Shown piece after piece: positions 39,106-64,000 of a DNA stretch of 64,000 nucleotides. Within the stretch, counting starts at the first letter, position 1; every line of letters begins with the position of its first letter. Origin of the DNA: Octopus sinensis (lineage: Eukaryota); the NCBI RefSeq assembly GCF_006345805.1, contig NC_043001.1, forward strand, positions 37,014,001 to 37,078,000, given 5' to 3'. The position numbers and the translations under genes are program-made. The notes below the pieces were generated by a model, which was not told the DNA's origin, ran no database searches, and worked only from the letters and a program-made list of their open reading frames with translations.

Positions 39106-39149
39106 ATGGCTGAGTATCTTGCGTCAATTTTTGGCACAGAAAAGGACAA
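39106..39149 (+). CDS. U2AF1: U2AF small subunit (U2AF35), coding exon 1 (44 nt)
   Basis: MAEYLASIFGTEKD(K), identical to the human N-terminus, followed by a GTAATT donor. Confidence 0.98.
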
Positions 39150-42628: not shown

Positions 42629-42716
42629 GGTTAACTGTTCCTTTTACTTCAAAATTGGAGCTTGTAGGCATGGAGAAAGATGTTCTCGCCTGCACAACAA
42701 ACCCACTTTCAGTCAG
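42629..42716 (+). CDS. U2AF1: U2AF35 exon 2 (88 nt), first CCCH zinc finger
   Basis: [29 protein letters not shown] with AG and GT boundaries. Confidence 0.98.
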
Positions 42717-46060: not shown

Positions 46061-46127
46061 ACAGTACTGCTACAGAATCTATACCTAAACCCTCAAAATG
46101 CTGCACTTACAGCTGATGGCTCTCATA
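46061..46127 (+). CDS. U2AF1: U2AF35 exon 3 (67 nt)
   Basis: TVLLQNLYLNPQNAALTADGSH; long pyrimidine tract with TAG, GTAAGT donor. Confidence 0.97.
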
Positions 46128-46367: not shown

Positions 46368-46373
46368 TTCCTG
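46368..46373 (+). CDS. U2AF1: 6-nt microexon TTCCTG of U2AF35
   Basis: U-rich tract, TTTGCAG|TTCCTG|GTAAGT; phase 1/1, frame preserving. Inclusion not verifiable from DNA alone. Confidence 0.75.
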
Positions 46374-49300
46374 GTAAGTCATTCATCATCCTATCCTGGA
46401 AGCCTATGGAAGTTTGTGCCAATTAGTAAATAGCCCTTTTTTTTCTTTAATCTCATAAGCACAGTTAGTGTAAATACTATCATTTTACAGGGGCTTAGTA
46501 GACCTAATGATAGGTATATAATAATAATAGTATGTAAAATTAGGTTTCTTTCTGTCTTAAACTGAAACTACCAAATTATTTTTTTGAAATATTTGATTTG
46601 TATTTTTTTTTTTTTTTTTTCTATTTATGACTACAATTTGACTTATTTTCGTTAAAATGCAGCTTAAGTTATATGACAAATGCATTATTTTATTTTTGTA
46701 AATCTAAACGTTATCAAAATAATTGCAGAGTAATGAAAATTTGAAAAAAGTGTTTTAAATAATATTCAAAACTATTTTCTTTTGGAAATTATATTATTCT
46801 TCATAGTATATTTGATAAAAATCCTTAATTAGAAATAAAGTTTAGAATCATTTTAAAACATTTAAGAAAAATTACTTTTAACTGATGTGACAGAAATTTT
46901 AAAAGTTTAAAAAGGTTATGACTTTATTTCTAAGTTTTGGCAGATTAGCAGTTAAAGAAGTTTTGTCTTAAAAGAATAGGAAATGTGAGATCTTTTACTT
47001 TATGTGAAGTGAGGTCCCTTCCTAGTTAATTGTGTGAAATGTAATCAAAAACTTTAAGAGGATTTAAAATAGTTTAGAATTGGACACTTTCTGACGACAA
47101 GCCACTAGATGAATTATTTAATAATGCACTGCATAGTATTTTGGATAATTTGAAATATATGGCAAACCTCTTTCTGATAAACATACAATTTCAGCATTAC
47201 TGTAAAAAATAGTGGTTGCATTTGGTTTTGATCTTTCTGTAGACAAAAAATGGGATTGATCTGGTTAGTTTTGAGTCTTAGACCATAAACAGAAAATATA
47301 CTCATCTATTCGCATAAAGAGTGATTGCTTATAACTTTAGGGTATAGAAACTAGAAGGCAGTTCGACTGGTTTGTTTGATTGATGTTAATAAAGCATATG
47401 CTGATAACAGGGTTATTACTTTACTATTATGGTTATCAAAACAAAATGGTATACATTACAAAATTATCTAAAATGCTGCATAGTACATTATTAAGCATAT
47501 CAGGTCATGAACTCTTATGTAAATGAGCAGGACCAGTTTAATTGAATCCCTAATTTCCATACACTATAAATAGCTCTAAGCTCCTAATCCTCTTTGTGGA
47601 CAGATGGATACTTTCTCTGATTAAGGTTAAGAAAACTAGAAACTAGTTAGATAATCCTGCTTTTTCTTTCCACAGTGACAAGAGCCTTTGGTGTAAACCA
47701 CTGTTTACATTTTACATTGATGTTAAAATTGTATGTTTATCCAAAATAGGCATACTTTACATTTCAAATTACTGACTTGTTTCCTTTTGACATAGAAAAA
47801 TTTTCTTGTAAGCATGTTTTTTTCTTATTTTTAAAAATTTTTTATTTTATTTTTATTTCTTGCAATTATCTTACCTATTCTTAAGAGTTGCTAACAATTA
47901 CTGCTAGGTTTTTGCTTTCTTTCCTAACTAAAAGGCAAATTTCTATAAAGAAAATTTTACGTACTCCATTCAGTATATCAACCTTACCATTTGATTTTTC
48001 CATCAGGTTGAGGGTTAAAAATCAACTGGGGCTGTCATATACACAAGACCTAGTTATCAGATATTTCTTTTAAGGGATTTTAAAAAATTATGTCAGTTCA
48101 TAAAGCAAGTGCACCAGCCATTTGAGCTTTAAATTCATTGTCCCTTGGTGAAATGACAGTGCTCATGATAGCTGTTTAATTAGTGAAATGTACTTTCAAT
48201 TGATACCCAAGATTAATATTTTCTTACATAAGTATTTTTTAAATTTTATTGCGGAAAATATGAAATCAAATGAATTAATAGGCATTTTTGTTTGTTTTTG
48301 ATCGACTGCATTTAAACATTCAATTTTGGACCGGAATTAGAAACAGGTAAGTGGCAGTCTCTGATCCATTACAAGACAAATCAGATAAACATTAAAAAGA
48401 ATATATGTTTTAATGAGTTTCTTTTTTTTTTTTTTTTCCTTTCCTTTATTTTGGTTTCTCTCCAGTTTGCAATCTCCTGTATTTCATTATCTGATTAAAT
48501 TGAGCAAACTCTGCCTCTTTTTGGATTAACGTTTGATGTTAGTGAGTAATGCAAACTGGACATACTAACAATATGGCTTCAGACCCCCCATTCCCTTGAT
48601 GTTAATTGGCTGACATAACAATGCATCAATAAGTGGATGTGTGGTGAAACTTAGGTGTGTTCTAATTGGCTGATAGATTAATTTGATATTAAATATGGCA
48701 ATTAAGATACAATAAAAAGATTGTGTAACAAGTTTTTACACATTAAGTTAGCATTCTTTGTTAGTCAATAAAAATAAAATCATTCTTGCTCATCAGTTTA
48801 TAAAACTGTAAATATATTCAAACATCGTGTCACAGAAGAGAAAGCAGAACTATGCGAAATTCACACTGAACGTAATCAAGCATACAAAAAGAAAGTGCAG
48901 CCAAATGAGTTTGGTGTGACAGTAATAGAAATGGTGAGCAACTGGAGATCAAAAAGAAGACAGGCTGAAAAGTTCCTTATTACAGTTTATGAAAAAGAAG
49001 GGGAAAAAAACGGCTTTATTCGCAGTGTATGCCAAAATGGAAAGCAAACTAGAGGGGTGGATTTTAGAACTTTGTTTCAATGGCCCTATGTTACATGTGC
49101 AACTTTTGGCCCATGCACTCTGCAAATCACTAAAGAACCGGGACATTTAATGTTTCAAATGGCTGGTGCACTCACTTATGAACTAACATGATTTTTAACT
49201 CCATCTTTAAAAAAGGGTCAAAATACCACATTAAGGGAGAGTGTCCAGGAAAAATGAGGTACTCAATGTTCAAATCACTTCACTAGTTTTACAGTGTTTT

Positions 49301-51250: not shown

Positions 51251-54040
51251 TCCTGAGATAGAAGAAAGTAGGTCTAACTACATTTGTAACACCTACCACT
51301 TAAGCTGACTGTTAATCATGATGCTGTGTGCTCTACACCGACTGTAGTCCTACTAAATCTTATGTCTGCAGTTTTTAAAATAAATTTTTTAACAGATTTC
51401 ACTACCTGCTTAAATGATGAATTGTTACCATACCATGCTCATAAAGCTGTCCTTTGTGTACTGGTGAACATCTTCATTAGCATTGCTGGGCCACTTCCTG
51501 CCTCATTCCCTTGCAAATTATTATTAGGAAGGAGAGTGATAGAAATTCTTAAGTACCAAACGAAATGTCTTCATGGTTTCTATATTCTAAGTTCAAATCC
51601 TATTAATTAAATGACCCGTGTCTCTCTCTTAACTAATTTGTGACCCTGTGTTAGTATAAAAAATCAGTATTAAATACTTTATTCTGGCTATATTATGTGG
51701 ATTAATTATACAATATTCTTTATTTCTAATGATATTCGCTTGTCAAAAACAATATTATATGCAAAAATTTGAAAATCATTAACCTATCACATTAAAAGAA
51801 AAACTACTTGTAGAGTATATTAATACTTTTAATTCAGCTTATTTAAGAAATCATACTACTTATTAAATTATTTAAAACGTTTTAAAATTTTTGTTTCAAA
51901 AGTTTTCTGTATATATCTCATTTAAGCACAGTATACTAACCCTTTTGAATGTTTTTCACAGTGACAAAACAATATATCAACTTGTTTGGTATTTTATTAA
52001 CCAATTTGATTATTCCAGCTAACAAAATATTGAAATCTAAGTTATCCAATTGTTAAAAATAAACTCCATAAAAATTTCTGAGCCAAAATAATTATATATT
52101 GAGTTGTCACTTTTATTGTTGTGATTTTAATTTGTTTAAATTGTATTTTGTGTTTTCTTCTGTTTATTTCAAATTGTTAGTTGATCTATCCATTTATCTT
52201 TCCACATGTTTGTGTACATTAATGGCTTCTAAATTTTGAAGCTGTGTCTTTGTGTTTTACTAGTTGTTGTGACCATTTCAACACTTTCACACAGCTTCTT
52301 TGTCTCCATGTCTTTGGATCTGTCACTTTCTATTTGTTATTCTTCATTGTTGTATTTGTCCACATAGTGTTCTTTATCATTAGCTTTATTCTTTTTATTG
52401 CTTTAGCAGTGTTCATAAGAGCCTGGCAGTCATTTCATTTGATTTGTAACTTTATATTCAGAATCATTGTTAAAGATGTTTTCTACTAAAACATTGAATT
52501 CATTACTTGAAGACCACCAATATCAGATTTGTTGCAATATCATTATTTAAGTTACAATGTGATCCTTTGGAAGGAGTACCAGCAACTGGTTTCTAATCAA
52601 ATTGAAGTTTCTAAAACACATACTTACGCACACAACACTCCTTCCTAACTTGATTGAAAATTATTTTAAATATATAACTATTATCTATAAAATGGTTTTG
52701 ACCATTTTCTTTCTTAGACAGCCAAATCTTAAGATTGCCATGCTGTTATGAAATCATATTACATATGATCCTTATATTATTTGCTTCTTGTATTTTGTTG
52801 ATTTTTATGCTTTCCTTTATTTATTTATTTATTTTTTTAAATAGTACAATTGTCCATAATACAATGTTTTCATTTTTTGTATTAAAAAAATCATCAATTT
52901 GTCATTTTTCTTTGTATGCTTAACTTGCTCAGTGATTGACAGCAAGGTAAATGTTCACTGCTCCCTAAAGCAGCTTTTCTTCTGGTATTTTATCAACTTA
53001 GCTTAGCTGTCTCCTTAACTTAAGATTTCTTCACTATTGTAATCCTTGAACACATTCATTCAAGTTAGCTCTGGGGCAACGAGAAAAATATCTTGCAGCC
53101 AGTAGCACTTATTTTAGCAGCTTGTTCTCGTCAATGGAATATTAAAATAATTAGTACAAAAATATTAAGGTAACCTTGATCAGAACTGATTCAAAAGCAA
53201 ACTCTTGTCTTTTATATATTATAATATATATATGACTATTTGACCCCTCTTGAATGCAACCATTTAAATATATATATATTACTATTTCTAATCTTCATTT
53301 ACTTTGACAAGTTTTGTCGTCGTGACAATACGAAATTGAAAACTGATTTCCATTCTCTTTTGAGAAAAATCACTTCAATATTCATGAATATATCCGCACC
53401 TCATCACTCGTTTTTTTTTTTTATTCTTAGTTATCATTTCATTCCTTTTTTTTTATCATGAAAATAGTGTGGATTTTTAAAAAGAATTATACTAAACATT
53501 TCTACCTGTTTAAAACCTCAAACTGTGTTTGGCAATGTATATAGTTGAAATGCATGTTAAGCTAAGGTATAAAAGTCTAGAAAAAATCTTTTAGTGGTTC
53601 ACTATTTTTGTTTTGTTATTACTCGACATACCTAATGAACCTCTCTTCTTGAGCACTGCAGAGGAATCTAAGTTGAATTAGTATTTTAACTGGACTTTAA
53701 GATGTTGTGATAAATACCTTACTATTTCCATTCTGTATAAATACATATTCCATTAATGCTGCACAGTGGATCTCGATAAATTTAATAATCTGTAATTCCT
53801 TAACGCTGCTTGGATCTTGAGTTATTAATTAAATTCTGTGCACTAATATGACGCTGCAAGGATTGTATAAATGAGGGGAAATCTTCACAAGTCCCAAGTT
53901 ATCCTCCTGTTACTTTAGTCACTATAAATCAACTACAAGCTTCTTGTCCCATTATTCTATCTAAATTTTAACTGCCACTATGACATTCCTTCCCTGTTGT
54001 GCCATGAAGGAATATCTTCATGTTTGTTACTTCTTTTCAG

Positions 54041-54117
54041 TGACAATGGACGATGTTGAAGCGCAACAGGATTTTGATGATTTTTTCGAGGAGGTATTTT
54101 GTGAAATAGAGGACAAG
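54041..54117 (+). CDS. U2AF1: U2AF35 exon 4a (77 nt), alternative UHM helix A
   Basis: TTCTTTTCAG acceptor, GTAACC donor; xTMDDVEAQQDFDDFFEEVFCEIEDK; phase 1/0. Confidence 0.9.
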
Positions 54118-54873
54118 GTAACCCTCCTTTCTTGCTTTCCTTTCAGCGCTAGCACAGGACAAACAAACAATTATTTTGCAATGTTTTTTTTTCTCATTGT
54201 TCTTGCTCTAAATATTTCAGTCCAGAATTTGTGTCATGGAAACAAGATATTCTTTGCAAAAATATTTAAATTAAATATATATCATTCATTTCCTTCCTTT
54301 CCTTATTGTTTCCATGTTGTAAATTTTGGGATTTCTATTACCAGAGAATGGTGATAGTTAGTACTTTTGGCTGATATAAAAAAATTTTTTCTTTTTTATT
54401 CTGTTTTCTAATTAATAACCTTTCAAATCATGCTTTACAACTTTTACAGCCAGTACATCATTTTCACCATTCTCTGGTAAAAATATTTTTCAAATAACTC
54501 ATTTTTATTTTCATTTGCAGATAAACATTGGATTATTTGATCAGTTTGAGTGGAAATGATATTTCTTATTGTAATCATTCTAAAGATTGCAATAAAGCAC
54601 TTGTTTCACATTATTTTGTAATAAAAATACTTAAACAATTCATAATACCATTTCCACTCATCTAGCCTACATTTTTCAGTCCAAACTAATGCACTTCATT
54701 TTACAGCTTTTGTTTCCTTCTTACATTATTTTTCAGTTTGTTGACTTGAAGCTGTTAAAATAGTTATTTTGTACTCTAATTCCTAGTGTAGTGCTCCTCC
54801 TAGCCTGTTGGTTATAGGTATTATAATTGTTATCCCACTATTCTATATCTGCTGGTGCTCTGTTTTCGTTTAG

Positions 54874-54947
54874 TCCAAATGGGAGAGCTTGAGATCCAAC
54901 AGCACTATGATGAATTCTTTGAAGAGGTTTATGTAGAAATGGAAAAG
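54874..54947 (+). CDS. U2AF1: U2AF35 exon 4b (74 nt), alternative UHM helix A
   Basis: TGTTTTCGTTTAG acceptor, GTAACC donor; xQMGELEIQQHYDEFFEEVYVEMEK; phase 1/0, paralogous to exon 4a. Confidence 0.9.
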
Positions 54948-58681: not shown

Positions 58682-58753
58682 TATGGTGAAATAGAAGAGA
58701 TGAATGTATGCGATAACCTGGGTGATCATCTTGTTGGCAATGTATATGTTAAG
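58682..58753 (+). CDS. U2AF1: U2AF35 exon 5 (72 nt)
   Basis: [24 protein letters not shown] with TAG acceptor and GTAAGC donor. Confidence 0.98.
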
Positions 58754-60006: not shown

Positions 60007-60140
60007 TTTCGTTATGAAGAAGATGCTGAAAAGGCTGTTAAAGATTTAAATAATCGTTGGTTTAATGGCCGCCCAATTCATGCAGAATTATCTCCAGTCA
60101 CTGACTTTAGGGAAGCTTGTTGCCGTCAATATGAAATGGG
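60007..60140 (+). CDS. U2AF1: U2AF35 exon 6 (134 nt), UHM RWF motif and start of zinc finger 2
   Basis: FRYEEDAEKAVKDLNNRWFNGRPIHAELSPVTDFREACCRQYEM(G). Confidence 0.98.
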
Positions 60141-60224: not shown

Positions 60225-60323
60225 AGAGTGCACTCGTGGAGGATTTTGCAATTTTATGCATTTGAAACCTATTTCTCGTGAACTTCGCAGAGAATTATAT
60301 GGTAGAACTCGGCGCCGGCGAAA
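60225..60323 (+). CDS. U2AF1: U2AF35 exon 7 (99 nt)
   Basis: [32 protein letters not shown]; CAG acceptor and GTAAGT donor. Confidence 0.98.
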
Positions 60324-60422: not shown

Positions 60423-60603
60423 GTCAAGATCCCGTTCACCTCCAACACGCCGTAGCAGGAGTCGCAGCCGAAGCCAAGAGCAACCACGTCGTGGCAATAG
60501 AAGTCGTAGCCGAGAAAGGAGACGATCCCGTTCAAGAAGTCGAGAAAGGAATCAAAGGCGATCTCGTTCTAGAGAGAGAGAAGGCCGAAGTGGACGTTTT
60601 TAA
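60423..60603 (+). CDS. U2AF1: U2AF35 exon 8, RS domain and stop
   Basis: CCCCACAG acceptor; SRSRSPPTRR...REREGRSGRF*, ending in the conserved RSGRF. Full protein is 252-255 aa depending on isoform. Confidence 0.97.
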
Positions 60604-60752: not shown

Positions 60753-60805
60753 TTAAGGCAGGTCTGGTTGAAGTCCACACAATAAGTTAGCAGGTAATGC
60801 TTTGT
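60753..60805 (-). CDS. ETHE1: Persulfide dioxygenase ETHE1, last exon (53 nt)
   Basis: TTTTTCAG acceptor; (D)KALPANLLCGLQPDLP* aligns to human DFAVPANMRCGVQ. Confidence 0.93.
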
Positions 60806-61012
60806 CTGAAAAAGAAACAAATACAGAATGGTGAAGAAAACTAAACTCAAAAAGGAATGTTGAATTAGACATTTCAGTTAAACTGCTTCTGGAGCAATAG
60901 ATTTAATTGCAATAGCTGAGTTTCTAAGATAGCACTTACAAGAGAATTTTTAGCAATTTAAGATAGATTTAGTTTTAACCTCAACAATTAGTATAATACA
61001 AATGGAGCTCAC

Positions 61013-61129
61013 CAATTTGATTTGGGTATGGTAGTTTCAGATTGGCCATAATTTCCAAAAATTCTTCCTTTGTTCGTCTTAAACGAGGGTTCAATTGTTT
61101 TTCTTCGTCAATAGTACTAACTGTATTTC
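61013..61129 (-). CDS. ETHE1: ETHE1 penultimate exon (117 nt)
   Basis: (G)[38 protein letters not shown]; TAG acceptor and GTGAGC donor. Confidence 0.96.
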
Positions 61130-61638
61130 CTAAAAAGTAATTGTAAAACTATCACAAGAGGTGCATATTTTTATCAATATTGAACGTGTATTGTTGAACA
61201 ATGCAAATTAGCTGGGAGCGGGTGCACAAGACAAAGGAATTCTGTGAAGCAGTGTACTAGAAAGATGACAAAGTGCCAAGCAATCCATATGAAAGGAACC
61301 TAAAGATGATAAAGAGCTGTTACAAATGGTAAGATGTGGTGCTAAGACCCATGCAAGCATAGGCAAACATGTAAATTAGTAATTTACAGATGGTTTTTCT
61401 TTCAAAAAGGTGAATTCCAGAGAATTTATATTTTTATCCTTACTCTTTTTAAACCCTTTTGAGAGACGGTGTTTTGGTATATGTAGCTGAAAATACCAAA
61501 ATTTTTTTCCATTGAGATCTATTGATTAGCCATTACACTTCAAAACCAACCATTCACATTTGTTGCAGCAGGTCGATGGATCAGCCTCAAAGTCTTTTCA
61601 GTTTGTATCAATCAGCCTGGGTATCCCAAGAGGGTTAA

Positions 61639-61854
61639 CCCTTTCATTACTGTATTTATTTTGAGATACTCTGTGTTTCTTTCAATTACTTATAATGAAG
61701 AATTTAGTAAAATAACTTAGTTATCATTCAGCTAGTGTTAGGAACATAAATTATGAATAAGGTTTGGTGGAACATTTTAATTCAAAGCTTATGAAACCAA
61801 GACATTTGTACAACAGAGCCAGAGGTGGTTTCAGCCAGGTTGGTATCAAAAGGG
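61639..61854. mobile_element. piggyBac MITE in an ETHE1 intron
   Basis: TTAA|CCCTTT...AAAGGG|TTAA; right end nearly identical to that of 42841-44120. Confidence 0.75.
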
Positions 61855-61887
61855 TTAATGTATCCTAAAGGCTATGATGAAACTTAC

Positions 61888-61977
61888 CTGTGTAATCATG
61901 TGCTGGATAGATTCGGTAGTGACCTGGAAGACTGAATATTTCTCGATGAACAGATTCATAAAGCGTTTCTGAACAAC
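61888..61977 (-). CDS. ETHE1: ETHE1 exon (90 nt)
   Basis: (G)[29 protein letters not shown](G) contains the YPAHDY motif; TAG acceptor and GTAAGT donor. Confidence 0.97.
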
Positions 61978-62691
61978 CTAAATGAAAAAGGGTATAAATT
62001 CATTTCTTTTAATAGCTTCTTGACATTACGGGTTCCAATTAAGAACATTTCTGTGTGTGTGTACACTTAGGAAGTTAGAGGTATATAAAAACAAGACAAA
62101 GAATGCATAAATTTTAATTGGAGTAAGAACTTAACATTACTGACTGATTAAAACAGCATTGAAAATTATTAATAGGTATCAGGATTAATTTATAGAATTG
62201 AGAATTTAGCTTAAGTGCAGATGTTGAGTTTGCTTCACAACCACATAGTTCTGGGTTTAATCAACCCTGTATACCTTAATAATAATAATCCCTTCTACTA
62301 AAGGTACAAGGCCTGAAATTTTGGGGGAGGGAGTAAGTCAATTACATCAACCCCAAAAGGATGAAAGTTTACCTCAGCGGAATTTGAACCCAGACAATGC
62401 ATATGTAGTCTATTGTGTTACACTACTCCGATATAAAGTATTGAACTTCAAAAACATTATATTCACACTTTACTGACTTTGATATTGTTTAAACGCTTGA
62501 GTTGTATATCTCTGAAAATGGTGCCTTTATAAACCATGGTTTCAATTATACTGGTGCAAAGCTCCAGTGTCTAGCATTGAAACAACAGAATAAGTGGCAC
62601 TTATTCATTTGGTTTTTTTTTTTTTTTACAATAATTTCTGGAAAATTTGGTGGTATTTAAACTCGTCACTAAAGCACCACAATATATATTT

Positions 62692-62888
62692 CTTTACTAC
62701 CCACAAGGGGACAAATGGATTAAGTCGATTATATCGACCCCAGTGCATAACTGGCACTTAATTTATCGACCCCGAAAGGATGAAAGGCAAAGTCGACCAC
62801 GGCGGAATTTGAACCCAGAACGTAACGGCAGACGAAATACAGCTACGCACTTCGCCGGCATGCTAACGTTTCTGCCAGCTCGCCGCCT
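62692..62888 (-). mobile_element. SINE family A copy with an 18-bp target-site duplication
   Basis: GCACCACAATATATATTT at 62674-62691 and 62889-62906. Confidence 0.9.
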
Positions 62889-63703
62889 GCACCACAATAT
62901 ATATTTTCTGACACTTTTTGCCTGCCATTCATTGACAGCAGAAATAATTGCTTGTAACACAGCAGGTGTAAAGCCTAAAATTTGAGAGGAAGGGTTAGGT
63001 TACTAACTAGTTGACTCCAAAAGGCGAAGTTGACCTCAGCAGGATTTGAACTCAGAATGGAAAGAGCTGGAAGAATTACCACAAGTCATTTTATTCGACA
63101 CTCTAATGATTCTGCCAGTCTGACAGGTTTAAAAGAAAGAAAATAATAATACAACAACAAACATGTAATTAACAACAAAACAATTTGTATCTTCACTTCA
63201 GTTTTTGAGGTCATCATGACATTGATAAATATTTAGGACGAAAATATGTGAAACAAACCCTTGTTAACATTTTACTAAGTGTAGAATAACTGGATCTTTT
63301 CAGTTTGAACGGCAGCTTTTTCTAGCAGTGTCATGTGAAATTGTCACCCATAATTATGACCCTAGTATCGATCTATTGCATTTCAATCTGTTTTAGGGGT
63401 GGGGGGAGGGTATCTTTTTTTTTTTCAAAAATGTAAATAAACCCAATCTGTTTCTTAAACGAGGGACATATTCATATGACACAATGTTTTCACCTCAATA
63501 GACGTCATTGATTGGTTGAAATTGAAGAAAAAAAGCAACAAATATCTTACAAACTATAGAATTTTCTCAATAAAGCCAAGAGAAAAAGATGTTTTATAAA
63601 CACATTCTACCAGTATACGAAGTTTAAAAGTGTTTAGTTAGGTGGAAATTATTTAAAAAAAAACTGCCATTCAAACTGAAAAGATCCGAATAACTCAAAT
63701 TAC

Positions 63704-63796
63704 CTTGCTGAAAATCTGTTCGTCCACAACCACGAATTAAGACAGCATCTCCAGTAAATACCATACTGTTTTCATGCCAGACAAATGAGTAACATC
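63704..63796 (-). CDS. ETHE1: ETHE1 exon (93 nt); upstream exons lie beyond the window
   Basis: (G)[30 protein letters not shown](G) contains the [16 protein letters not shown] signature; TAG acceptor and GTAATT donor. Confidence 0.97.
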
Positions 63797-64000
63797 CTAC
63801 AAAAATAGAGAAAGAAGTTAAAAAAAAAGAAAATATAAACAGAACATTTTGTAGCTGGAAGTTTAAAATTTAAAATCAAGCATTCAGTATTATGGCATTT
63901 AAACCAACCAGTTCATATCCTGTTTTTATGTTCAAACTGGCTAGATTTGACCTCACATACCAACCCTAAAATATCATTCTAAAAATTAACAGTTAGGTGT

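Follow-up and report, generated by a model that had tools for sequence, protein, structure and literature searches.

Tandem copies of exon 4 probably exchange helix A of U2AF35 in Octopus sinensis, a pair shared with other molluscs

U2AF35 is the factor that recognises the AG of almost all 3' splice sites. The window analysed here, a stretch of 64,000 nt of Octopus sinensis DNA (NC_043001.1, positions 37,014,001 to 37,078,000; coordinates below are those of the window unless a contig is named), carries the U2AF1/U2AF35 orthologue on its plus strand. The coding sequence (CDS) spans 39106-60603, as delimited by tblastn with human U2AF35 and by reading of the splice sites. The fourth exon of this gene is present in two tandem copies, 4a and 4b. 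It is very probable that these copies form a genuine, functional mutually exclusive pair, and the segment that they exchange corresponds to helix A of the UHM domain.

The assignment of the gene is firm. The product of the 4a form is 99% identical to an O. sinensis RefSeq U2AF35 isoform, matches the families PF00642 and PF00076, and displays the ZnF(CCCH)-UHM-ZnF(CCCH)-RS architecture of U2AF35, including the sequence NNRWF (RWF motif). In line with this, structure-sequence matches were obtained to U2AF23 of S. pombe (4yh8_A, 2.8e-77) and to the UHM of human U2AF35 (1jmt_A, 1.2e-47).

Exons 4a and 4b match each other in tblastn with an E-value of about 5e-6 in the 64-kb window, which puts their paralogy beyond chance. 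They share approximately 65% of their nucleotides and 55% of their amino acids, are both entered in phase 1 and left in phase 0, and both have AG/GT sites with YAG acceptors. An earlier note, made from the window sequence, had given the coordinates, lengths, phases and translations of the two copies and the 756-nt spacing between them, and these were found to be exact to the base on re-reading. The donor AAG/GTAACC, which it reported as shared by both copies, is confirmed for Octopus, but other molluscs have not conserved it. A third copy of exon 4 was not found in the window by tblastn. Exon 3 was said to be single, and tblastn indeed returns one copy in the window; neither there nor at any of the mollusc loci examined was a second exon 3 found.

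Neither 77 nor 74 is divisible by three, so that an early stop results when both copies are included and also when both are skipped. The assembled coding sequences agree with the earlier proposal that exactly one copy can be used per mRNA. The 4a-only CDS (762 nt) and the 4b-only CDS (759 nt) are both open. The CDS with 4a and 4b is frameshifted and runs into a TAG inside 4b, and the CDS without either copy ends as ...SHIW*, at a TGA at the start of exon 5. The lengths of 77 and 74 nt are conserved in 6/6 mollusc genomes. In human U2AF1 the transcripts that contain both or neither of the alternative exons are substrates of nonsense-mediated decay (NMD) (PMC5224494, PMC6547761), and from this precedent we infer that the non-productive octopus forms would be degraded likewise.

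The distribution of the pair was studied in the best 120 homologues and at the genomic loci of selected taxa. Among these homologues the molluscan proteins show two sharply distinct types of exon 4: an a-type (..DDVEAQQDFDDFFEEVF(T/C)ELEDK) and a b-type (QMDELEIQQHYDEFFEEVYVEMEK), the latter being one residue shorter. A 77-nt a-exon followed by a 74-nt b-exon, with AG/GT sites, was also identified in O. bimaculoides, in the chiton Liolophura sinensis, in Mercenaria (two assemblies), in Pecten maximus and in the gastropod Gigantopelta aegis. At these loci the intron between the two exons measures 564-1249 nt. The 4a protein segments of octopus and chiton are 88% identical. A single exon 4 of ancestral length is found in the brachiopod Lingula, the nemertean Lineus and the annelid Capitella.

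The homology search over molluscs and other spiralians, which had been put forward as a means to date the duplication, thus finds the pair in six mollusc genomes and a single exon 4 in annelid, brachiopod and nemertean. As the pair is common to chitons (Aculifera) and conchiferans, the duplication had taken place before the lineages of living molluscs split. Judged from these sequences the exon 4 pair is pan-molluscan and more than 500 million years (My) old, and not an octopus novelty. The idea of an independently evolved two-isoform system therefore holds with respect to the vertebrate switch, which concerns a different exon in a different lineage, but does not hold for octopus only. The same data dispose of an assembly artefact, which the earlier note had already called unlikely, and of a fortuitous resemblance: with ~65% nucleotide identity the copies are divergent, a separate orthologue of either copy is found in five other mollusc genomes, and they recur in independent RNA-seq contigs, so this alternative can be regarded as refuted.

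The heterobranch Biomphalaria glabrata contains an a-type exon 4 only (contig L006, 12184-12255; L006/L007), about 200 nt from exon 5 (12457), and no b-type protein was found for five heterobranch genera among the best 120 homologues. It looks as if 4b was secondarily lost in the heterobranchs. The presence of the a-type as sole exon 4 in Biomphalaria implies that this type alone can support U2AF35 function. In Mytilus (P0005, P0007), Magallana (K1QZ58, P0011) and Nucella (P0036) ab initio protein models fuse an a-type to a b-type segment. Such models are mis-models of the exclusive pair and not real isoforms; the a-then-b arrangement indicates that the exon order is conserved in those species.

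Selection on the two copies was compared over Octopus, the chiton, Mercenaria, Pecten and Gigantopelta, using the Nei-Gojobori method. Mean protein identity among the five taxa is 87% for 4a and 88% for 4b, and a- and b-type differ at about 45% of the positions in every species. The non-synonymous distance (dN) between orthologues ranges from 0.016 to 0.144 for 4a and from 0.033 to 0.104 for 4b, with saturated synonymous distance (dS), and that between the paralogues 4a and 4b from 0.21 to 0.29. Orthologues group by exon type. Since the Cambrian, therefore, purifying selection on the protein has maintained both copies, with no gene conversion between them. The earlier suggestion that both exons are under selection is borne out by this dN/dS check, with dN not exceeding 0.144 and saturated dS for both. 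The synonymous sites also seem somewhat constrained. The fraction of identical two-fold codons is 0.72 in 4a and 0.77 in 4b versus 0.61 in the constitutive exons, although these pairwise counts are not phylogenetically independent, and 8 of the 14 two-fold codon columns of 4b are invariant over the five taxa versus 11 of 56 in the constitutive exons.

The duplicated exon had been equated with helix A of the UHM, and AlphaFold2 models, used for helix boundaries only, lead to the same conclusion. Each isoform is modelled with one long helix, which spans residues 73-94 when 4a is used and 71-90 when 4b is used. In both forms the helix boundaries fall inside the alternative exon, which implies that the exon encodes helix A (alpha2). 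Helix A of the UHM is acidic and binds the basic ULM tail, and its glutamate forms a salt bridge with the RXF arginine beside the ULM tryptophan (PMC5113200). The helix also packs against alpha6, and the two jointly touch the large subunit (PMC4536312). Both a- and b-type retain the FFEEV core and the salt-bridge glutamate. Approximately eight flanking positions are type-specific (a versus b: DF/HY, F/Y, C or T/V, I or L/M, ED/E) and have been fixed for more than 500 My. In six molluscs the a-type carries a net charge of -9 or -10 and the b-type one of -7 or -8, making the a-type more acidic by 1-3 charges. A difference between the two forms in heterodimer affinity or stability is plausible, and we infer that U2AF65 binding may be tuned and 3' splice-site choice altered.

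Table 1. Exons, microexons and conserved intron blocks of the U2AF35 gene (window coordinates)
Feature	Position	Strand	Remarks
U2AF35 exon 1	39106-39149	+	tblastn with human U2AF35, splice sites
U2AF35 exon 2	42629-42716	+	tblastn with human U2AF35, splice sites
U2AF35 exon 3	46061-46127	+	67 nt, ends in phase 1, single; homologue of the exon duplicated in vertebrates
Microexon m1	46368-46373	+	6 nt, TTCCTG; pattern search with AG/GT flanks
Microexon m2	48341-48346	+	6 nt, AAACAG; pattern search with AG/GT flanks
Conserved intron block 5' of 4a	53992-54040	+	from comparison with distant cephalopod
Exon 4a	54041-54117	+	77 nt, ttttcag/TG...AAG/gtaacc; encodes (M/V)TMDDVEAQQDFDDFFEEVFCEIEDK; a-type helix A, net charge -10
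Conserved intron block 3' of 4a	54118-54165	+	from comparison with distant cephalopod
4a-4b intron	54118-54873	+	756 nt; AG-exclusion zone before 4b of 54 nt
Conserved intron block 60-95 nt 5' of 4b	54780-54815	+	CTAGTGTAGTGCTCCTC.TA.CCTGTTGGTTAT; kept in four RNA-seq contigs of other cephalopods
Exon 4b	54874-54947	+	74 nt, gtttag/TC...AAG/gtaacc; encodes (I/V)QMGELEIQQHYDEFFEEVYVEMEK; b-type helix A, one residue shorter, net charge -7
U2AF35 exon 5	58682-58753	+	72 nt; TGA out of frame when both exon 4 copies are skipped
U2AF35 exon 6	60007-60140	+	tblastn with human U2AF35, splice sites
U2AF35 exon 7	60225-60323	+	tblastn with human U2AF35, splice sites
U2AF35 exon 8	60423-60603	+	tblastn with human U2AF35, splice sites

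Within the cephalopods the two exons are conserved at the nucleotide level as well. The introns of O. bimaculoides are 97-100% identical to those in the window and hence too close for footprinting; exon 4a is open and identical in this species. A more distant cephalopod was available in Logan RNA-seq contigs (L012-L015, from SRR20545806, SRR20545807, SRR25097171 and ERR4009593). Compared to the window, 76 of 77 bases are identical in 4a and 73 of 74 in 4b, versus 87.5% in exon 5, 87.3% in exon 6, 81.8% in exon 7 and 75.7% in exon 8. Counted as mismatches, this amounts to 2/151 nt in 4a and 4b versus 44/305 nt in exons 5-7 (Fisher p = 1.5e-6). The sole difference in 4a is synonymous. The introns are unalignable save for four stretches, i.e. 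some 49 nt 5' of 4a (46 of 49 aligned bases identical), the block 3' of 4a (46 of 48), the block upstream of 4b and the polypyrimidine region before 4b. Going by the alignment, the conserved exons and flanks bear the usual signature of regulated alternative exons, and the 36-nt block upstream of 4b is a candidate branch-point or regulator-binding region.

Three structures around 4a are predicted by RNAfold in both species. A hairpin (CAUGAAGG..CUUCAUG) lies just 5' of the polypyrimidine tract, another (UUGUUACU/AGUGACAA) encloses this tract and the 3' splice site, and a 15-bp stem between exonic GAGGAGGUAUUUUGU and ACAAGGUAACCCUCC would hide the 5' splice site (CCCUCC in the block 3' of 4a with exonic GAGGAGG). 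These predicted hairpins are leads only. Folding of the 4b region is no better than that of shuffled sequences (z = -0.06).

The RefSeq annotation of O. sinensis contains four isoforms, X1-X4. Two of them use 4a and two use 4b, in each case once with and once without microexon m2, and none includes both exon 4 copies. The two microexons are located in the 7.9-kb intron between exons 3 and 4a and lengthen the beginning of the helix A region by PV or PETV. Microexon m1 occurs in X1-X4 and changes ...GSH-M/I to ...GSHIPV; m2 occurs in X1 and X2, and m1 and m2 together give IPETV. Oysters and a hemichordate insert 'SK' at the junction that m1 and m2 occupy in octopus, so that a microexon at this place may be old. 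RefSeq isoforms with either exon are also present for O. bimaculoides, Pecten, Mercenaria, Gigantopelta and Crassostrea, and in Sinanodonta the a- and b-type appear as two GenBank models from one locus tag. The earlier note knew of no description of the pair. This stands for the full-text literature, in which only the vertebrate Ab/3 pair was found and no mollusc or exon 4 pair, but not for the databases, where RefSeq isoforms already annotate either exon.

In the Logan contigs 4b is spliced to exons 5-8, and the intron 5' of 4b is retained in 4/4. One of these contigs (L013) extends further, through the entire 4a-4b intron and exon 4a into the last part of the intron before it, and 4a is seen there only in unspliced form. 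This suggests that the contigs may be partly processed pre-mRNAs, in which the introns around the alternative pair would be the last to be removed.

Several observations weigh against a functional helix A switch in octopus. The collection contains full-length octopod proteins derived from transcripts (P0004, P0122, P0124-P0126), and every one of them carries m1 and 4b. A spliced 4a transcript was not seen, and the basis for 4a usage in octopus is formed by RefSeq (Gnomon) models. When homologues were sought with a 74-aa query around 4a, nothing but short fragment open reading frames of other phyla came up, and no cephalopod 4a transcript was among them. The confidence of the AlphaFold2 models is low, with a mean predicted local distance difference test score (pLDDT) of 52-54, and of 60-83 in the UHM. 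No intronic element common to five mollusc taxa emerged from a k-mer search, and none is shared between mollusc classes. Finally, the 4a hairpins score modestly (z = -2.1 and -1.1), and the two species resemble each other too closely in sequence to reveal covariation. Probably 4b is the default and 4a a regulated minor form in cephalopods.

The course of events that we consider best in line with these data starts with exon 4 being duplicated in tandem, at a time before the extant molluscs diverged from each other. A productive mRNA would join exon 3, via one or two 6-nt microexons, to exactly one exon 4 copy and then to exon 5. Judging from human U2AF1, mRNAs with both copies or neither would be degraded by NMD, and they could double as a sink for dosage control or autoregulation. 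The chosen exon would supply the entire acidic helix A, and with it the tryptophan pocket, the Glu-Arg salt bridge, the binding of the ULM tail and the packing against alpha6. Most likely the switch would yield two U2AF heterodimers with unequal subunit affinity or stability, and possibly also with different preferences for 3' splice sites. The usage of 4a would be controlled by cis-elements in the ultraconserved exon and its intron flanks.

Alternatively, the two isoforms could be functionally equivalent, and the pair be kept mainly as a device for dosage control or autoregulation through alternative splicing coupled to NMD, as proposed for the human U2AF1 exons 3a/3b. On this view mRNA with a premature stop would arise because U2AF favours the inclusion of both copies, or because both are skipped. 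For human U2AF1, double inclusion has been put forward as an autoregulatory loop (PMC6547761, PMC5224494). A function at the RNA level would agree with this precedent, with the fact that neither exon length has become divisible by three in any of the six mollusc genomes, and with the nucleotide ultraconservation of exons and flanks. Yet the type-specific residues (F/Y, ED/E and DF/HY) are fixed over four mollusc classes despite saturated synonymous sites, which indicates selection on each version of the protein, and a role in dosage and a difference in protein can coexist. We therefore consider it unlikely that dosage is the main reason for the persistence of the pair.

A second alternative places exclusivity at the splicing step itself, through competing RNA pairings of the docking/selector type or through steric hindrance, with the reading frame and NMD as a mere backstop. 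The conserved blocks that flank 4a and precede 4b, as well as the local hairpins predicted over the 4a splice sites, would suit such a mechanism. Competing pairings, which the earlier note had named as something to look for, were sought by an RNAduplex scan of all pairs of conserved blocks. Only one duplex, between the blocks upstream and downstream of 4a (U4a-D4a), rises above noise; it is weak (z = -2.8), would loop out 4a, and is also predicted in the second species. All remaining block pairs score at chance level, and an outstanding docking/selector pair was not found among them, just as no element is common to the mollusc classes.

Steric hindrance can be rejected. The 4a-4b intron is 756 nt long, and 564-1249 nt in the other molluscs; the AG-exclusion zone before 4b is 54 nt (11-81 nt in other molluscs), and there is no distant branch point. 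Incompatibility between U2- and U12-type sites was rejected as well: the introns are U2-type GT-AG throughout, with AAG/GTAACC for both donors, YAG acceptors and neighbouring donors GTAAGT, and not the U12-type (A/G)TATCCTT. A perfect inverted repeat of 17 bp in the 4a-4b intron (54338-54354/54464-54480) was considered as a selector but is disrupted in O. bimaculoides. This intron contains two more inverted repeats (54222-54245/54306-54329 and 54547-54572/54635-54660). All three are probably remnants of repeats or transposons rather than regulators, as the region is unalignable in the distant cephalopod. Overall, exclusivity that is imposed by pairing or by steric means has about the same small chance of being correct as the dosage explanation.

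The third alternative is that Octopus uses 4b only, 4a being a relic or a regulatory decoy (poison exon) and the RefSeq 4a isoforms being modelling artefacts. All transcript-derived octopod proteins, at least five in number, carry 4b, and 4a occurs in the RNA-seq contigs in unspliced form. However, the 4a reading frame is intact, unchanged in O. bimaculoides and altered by one synonymous substitution in the distant cephalopod. The high protein identity to the chiton 4a and the role of the a-type as sole exon in Biomphalaria point in the same direction, and a decoy exon would have no need to keep its codons. We regard this explanation as very improbable, and retain the reading of 4a and 4b as a functional, mutually exclusive pair.

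The surroundings of the gene may be described briefly. A convergent neighbour with a metallo-beta-lactamase fold (PF00753) is found 3' of U2AF35 on the minus strand (~60765-64000; also L001 24264-27107 and L012 1090-2073). RNA-seq contigs that join this neighbour to the U2AF35 mRNA imply overlapping 3' ends. In the chiton (L002) and the nemertean (L004) a PEN-2 gene (PF10251) lies head-to-head 5' of U2AF35, which represents a small conserved synteny.

Other lineages display duplications in different parts of U2AF35. In Lingula anatina there are tandem copies of exon 2 (L003 3006-3092 and 3216-3302), each of 88 nt, with canonical sites and an intron of 122 nt between them; the copies differ in zinc finger 1 by an R to K change (CRHG versus CKHG), and they likely represent an independent mutually exclusive pair. 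In Lineus longissimus it is the 67-nt exon 3, the same exon as in the vertebrate switch, that occurs in tandem (L004 3773-3839 and 3879-3945), and the RefSeq isoforms X1 and X2 differ only by N50Q and I53M. The two copies are 39 nt apart, so that the intervening stretch is too short to be spliced out. Finally, isoform pairs of equal length in the corals Orbicella faveolata (P0061/P0062) and Acropora palmata (P0073/P0081) differ, at the protein level, by a substitution block of 21 residues in the zinc finger 2/alpha6 exon. This suggests another duplicated exon pair.

Counted together, the vertebrate, mollusc, nemertean, brachiopod and coral cases suggest four or five independent births of such switches in U2AF35, and most of the switch exons lie on or near the surface that holds U2AF65 or in the RNA-binding zinc fingers. 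We tentatively propose, as a possibility that is somewhat more doubtful than probable, that U2AF35 is a recurrent target of tandem-duplication two-isoform switches, and that the mollusc a- and b-forms make up two heterodimer classes differing in subunit affinity and 3' splice-site preference, which were kept for more than 500 My and lost in heterobranch snails. If the brachiopod, nemertean and coral cases hold, the recurrence would point to repeated selection in metazoans for two versions of the "constitutive" U2AF35. The mollusc pair is in any case an independent and much older two-isoform system, and as such a natural replicate of the vertebrate switch at a neighbouring structural element of the same U2AF65 interface. 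Oysters and other bivalves are experimentally tractable animals that carry such a system. The type-specific residues, fixed for half a billion years, mark positions of interest, and the ultraconserved flanks are concrete candidate cis-elements.

Among known systems the pair can first be compared to the mutually exclusive exon (MXE) pairs that arise by tandem duplication and are enforced by the reading frame (Kassiopeia/Hatje-Kollmar; PMC5740500, PMC8373072). Like these, it consists of neighbouring, homologous exons that agree in phase and have canonical sites; both exons are under selection, and the exchange preserves the fold. It joins this established type and is not categorically new. Unlike the general MXE pairs (PMC5740500, PMC8373072), it sits in a core constitutive splicing factor, so that its own splicing may depend on its own product, and it is set apart by its documented age, which reaches back to the mollusc last common ancestor, and by the nucleotide ultraconservation in cephalopods. 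With the arthropod docking/selector clusters (Dscam, 14-3-3zeta and srp; PMC4691838) it shares the occurrence of tandem exons with conserved intronic elements in an invertebrate, whereas the complementarity between docking and selector sites that typifies those clusters was not found among the conserved blocks.

The closest relative is the switch in vertebrate U2AF1, which yields isoforms that Pacheco et al. reportedly described in 2004 as U2AF35a and U2AF35b. The vertebrate switch consists of a pair of 67-nt exons, Ab/3 (PMC5224494, PMC6547761), whose variants lie in RNP2, the loop and the start of helix A and affect the U2AF65-dependent stability (PMC5224494). Both systems involve a tandem-duplicated pair inside the UHM of the same gene, with lengths that are not multiples of three, and in both the inclusion of both or neither exon gives a premature termination codon (NMD having been shown in human). 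In both, moreover, the variation touches alpha2/helix A and the ULM/alpha6 interface, and conserved intronic blocks are located upstream. That octopus uses a different exon from vertebrates, as the earlier note had stated, is evident from its single 67-nt exon 3: the duplication concerns exon 4 (77/74 nt), one exon downstream, and not exon 3 (67/67 nt). Its origin, at the base of the Mollusca, is independent of that in vertebrates. The mollusc pair also swaps the whole of helix A, with changes at about 10 of 24 positions and a one-residue deletion, whereas vertebrate Ab/3 changes 7 residues. The mollusc and vertebrate systems thus converge on one interface by means of different exons.

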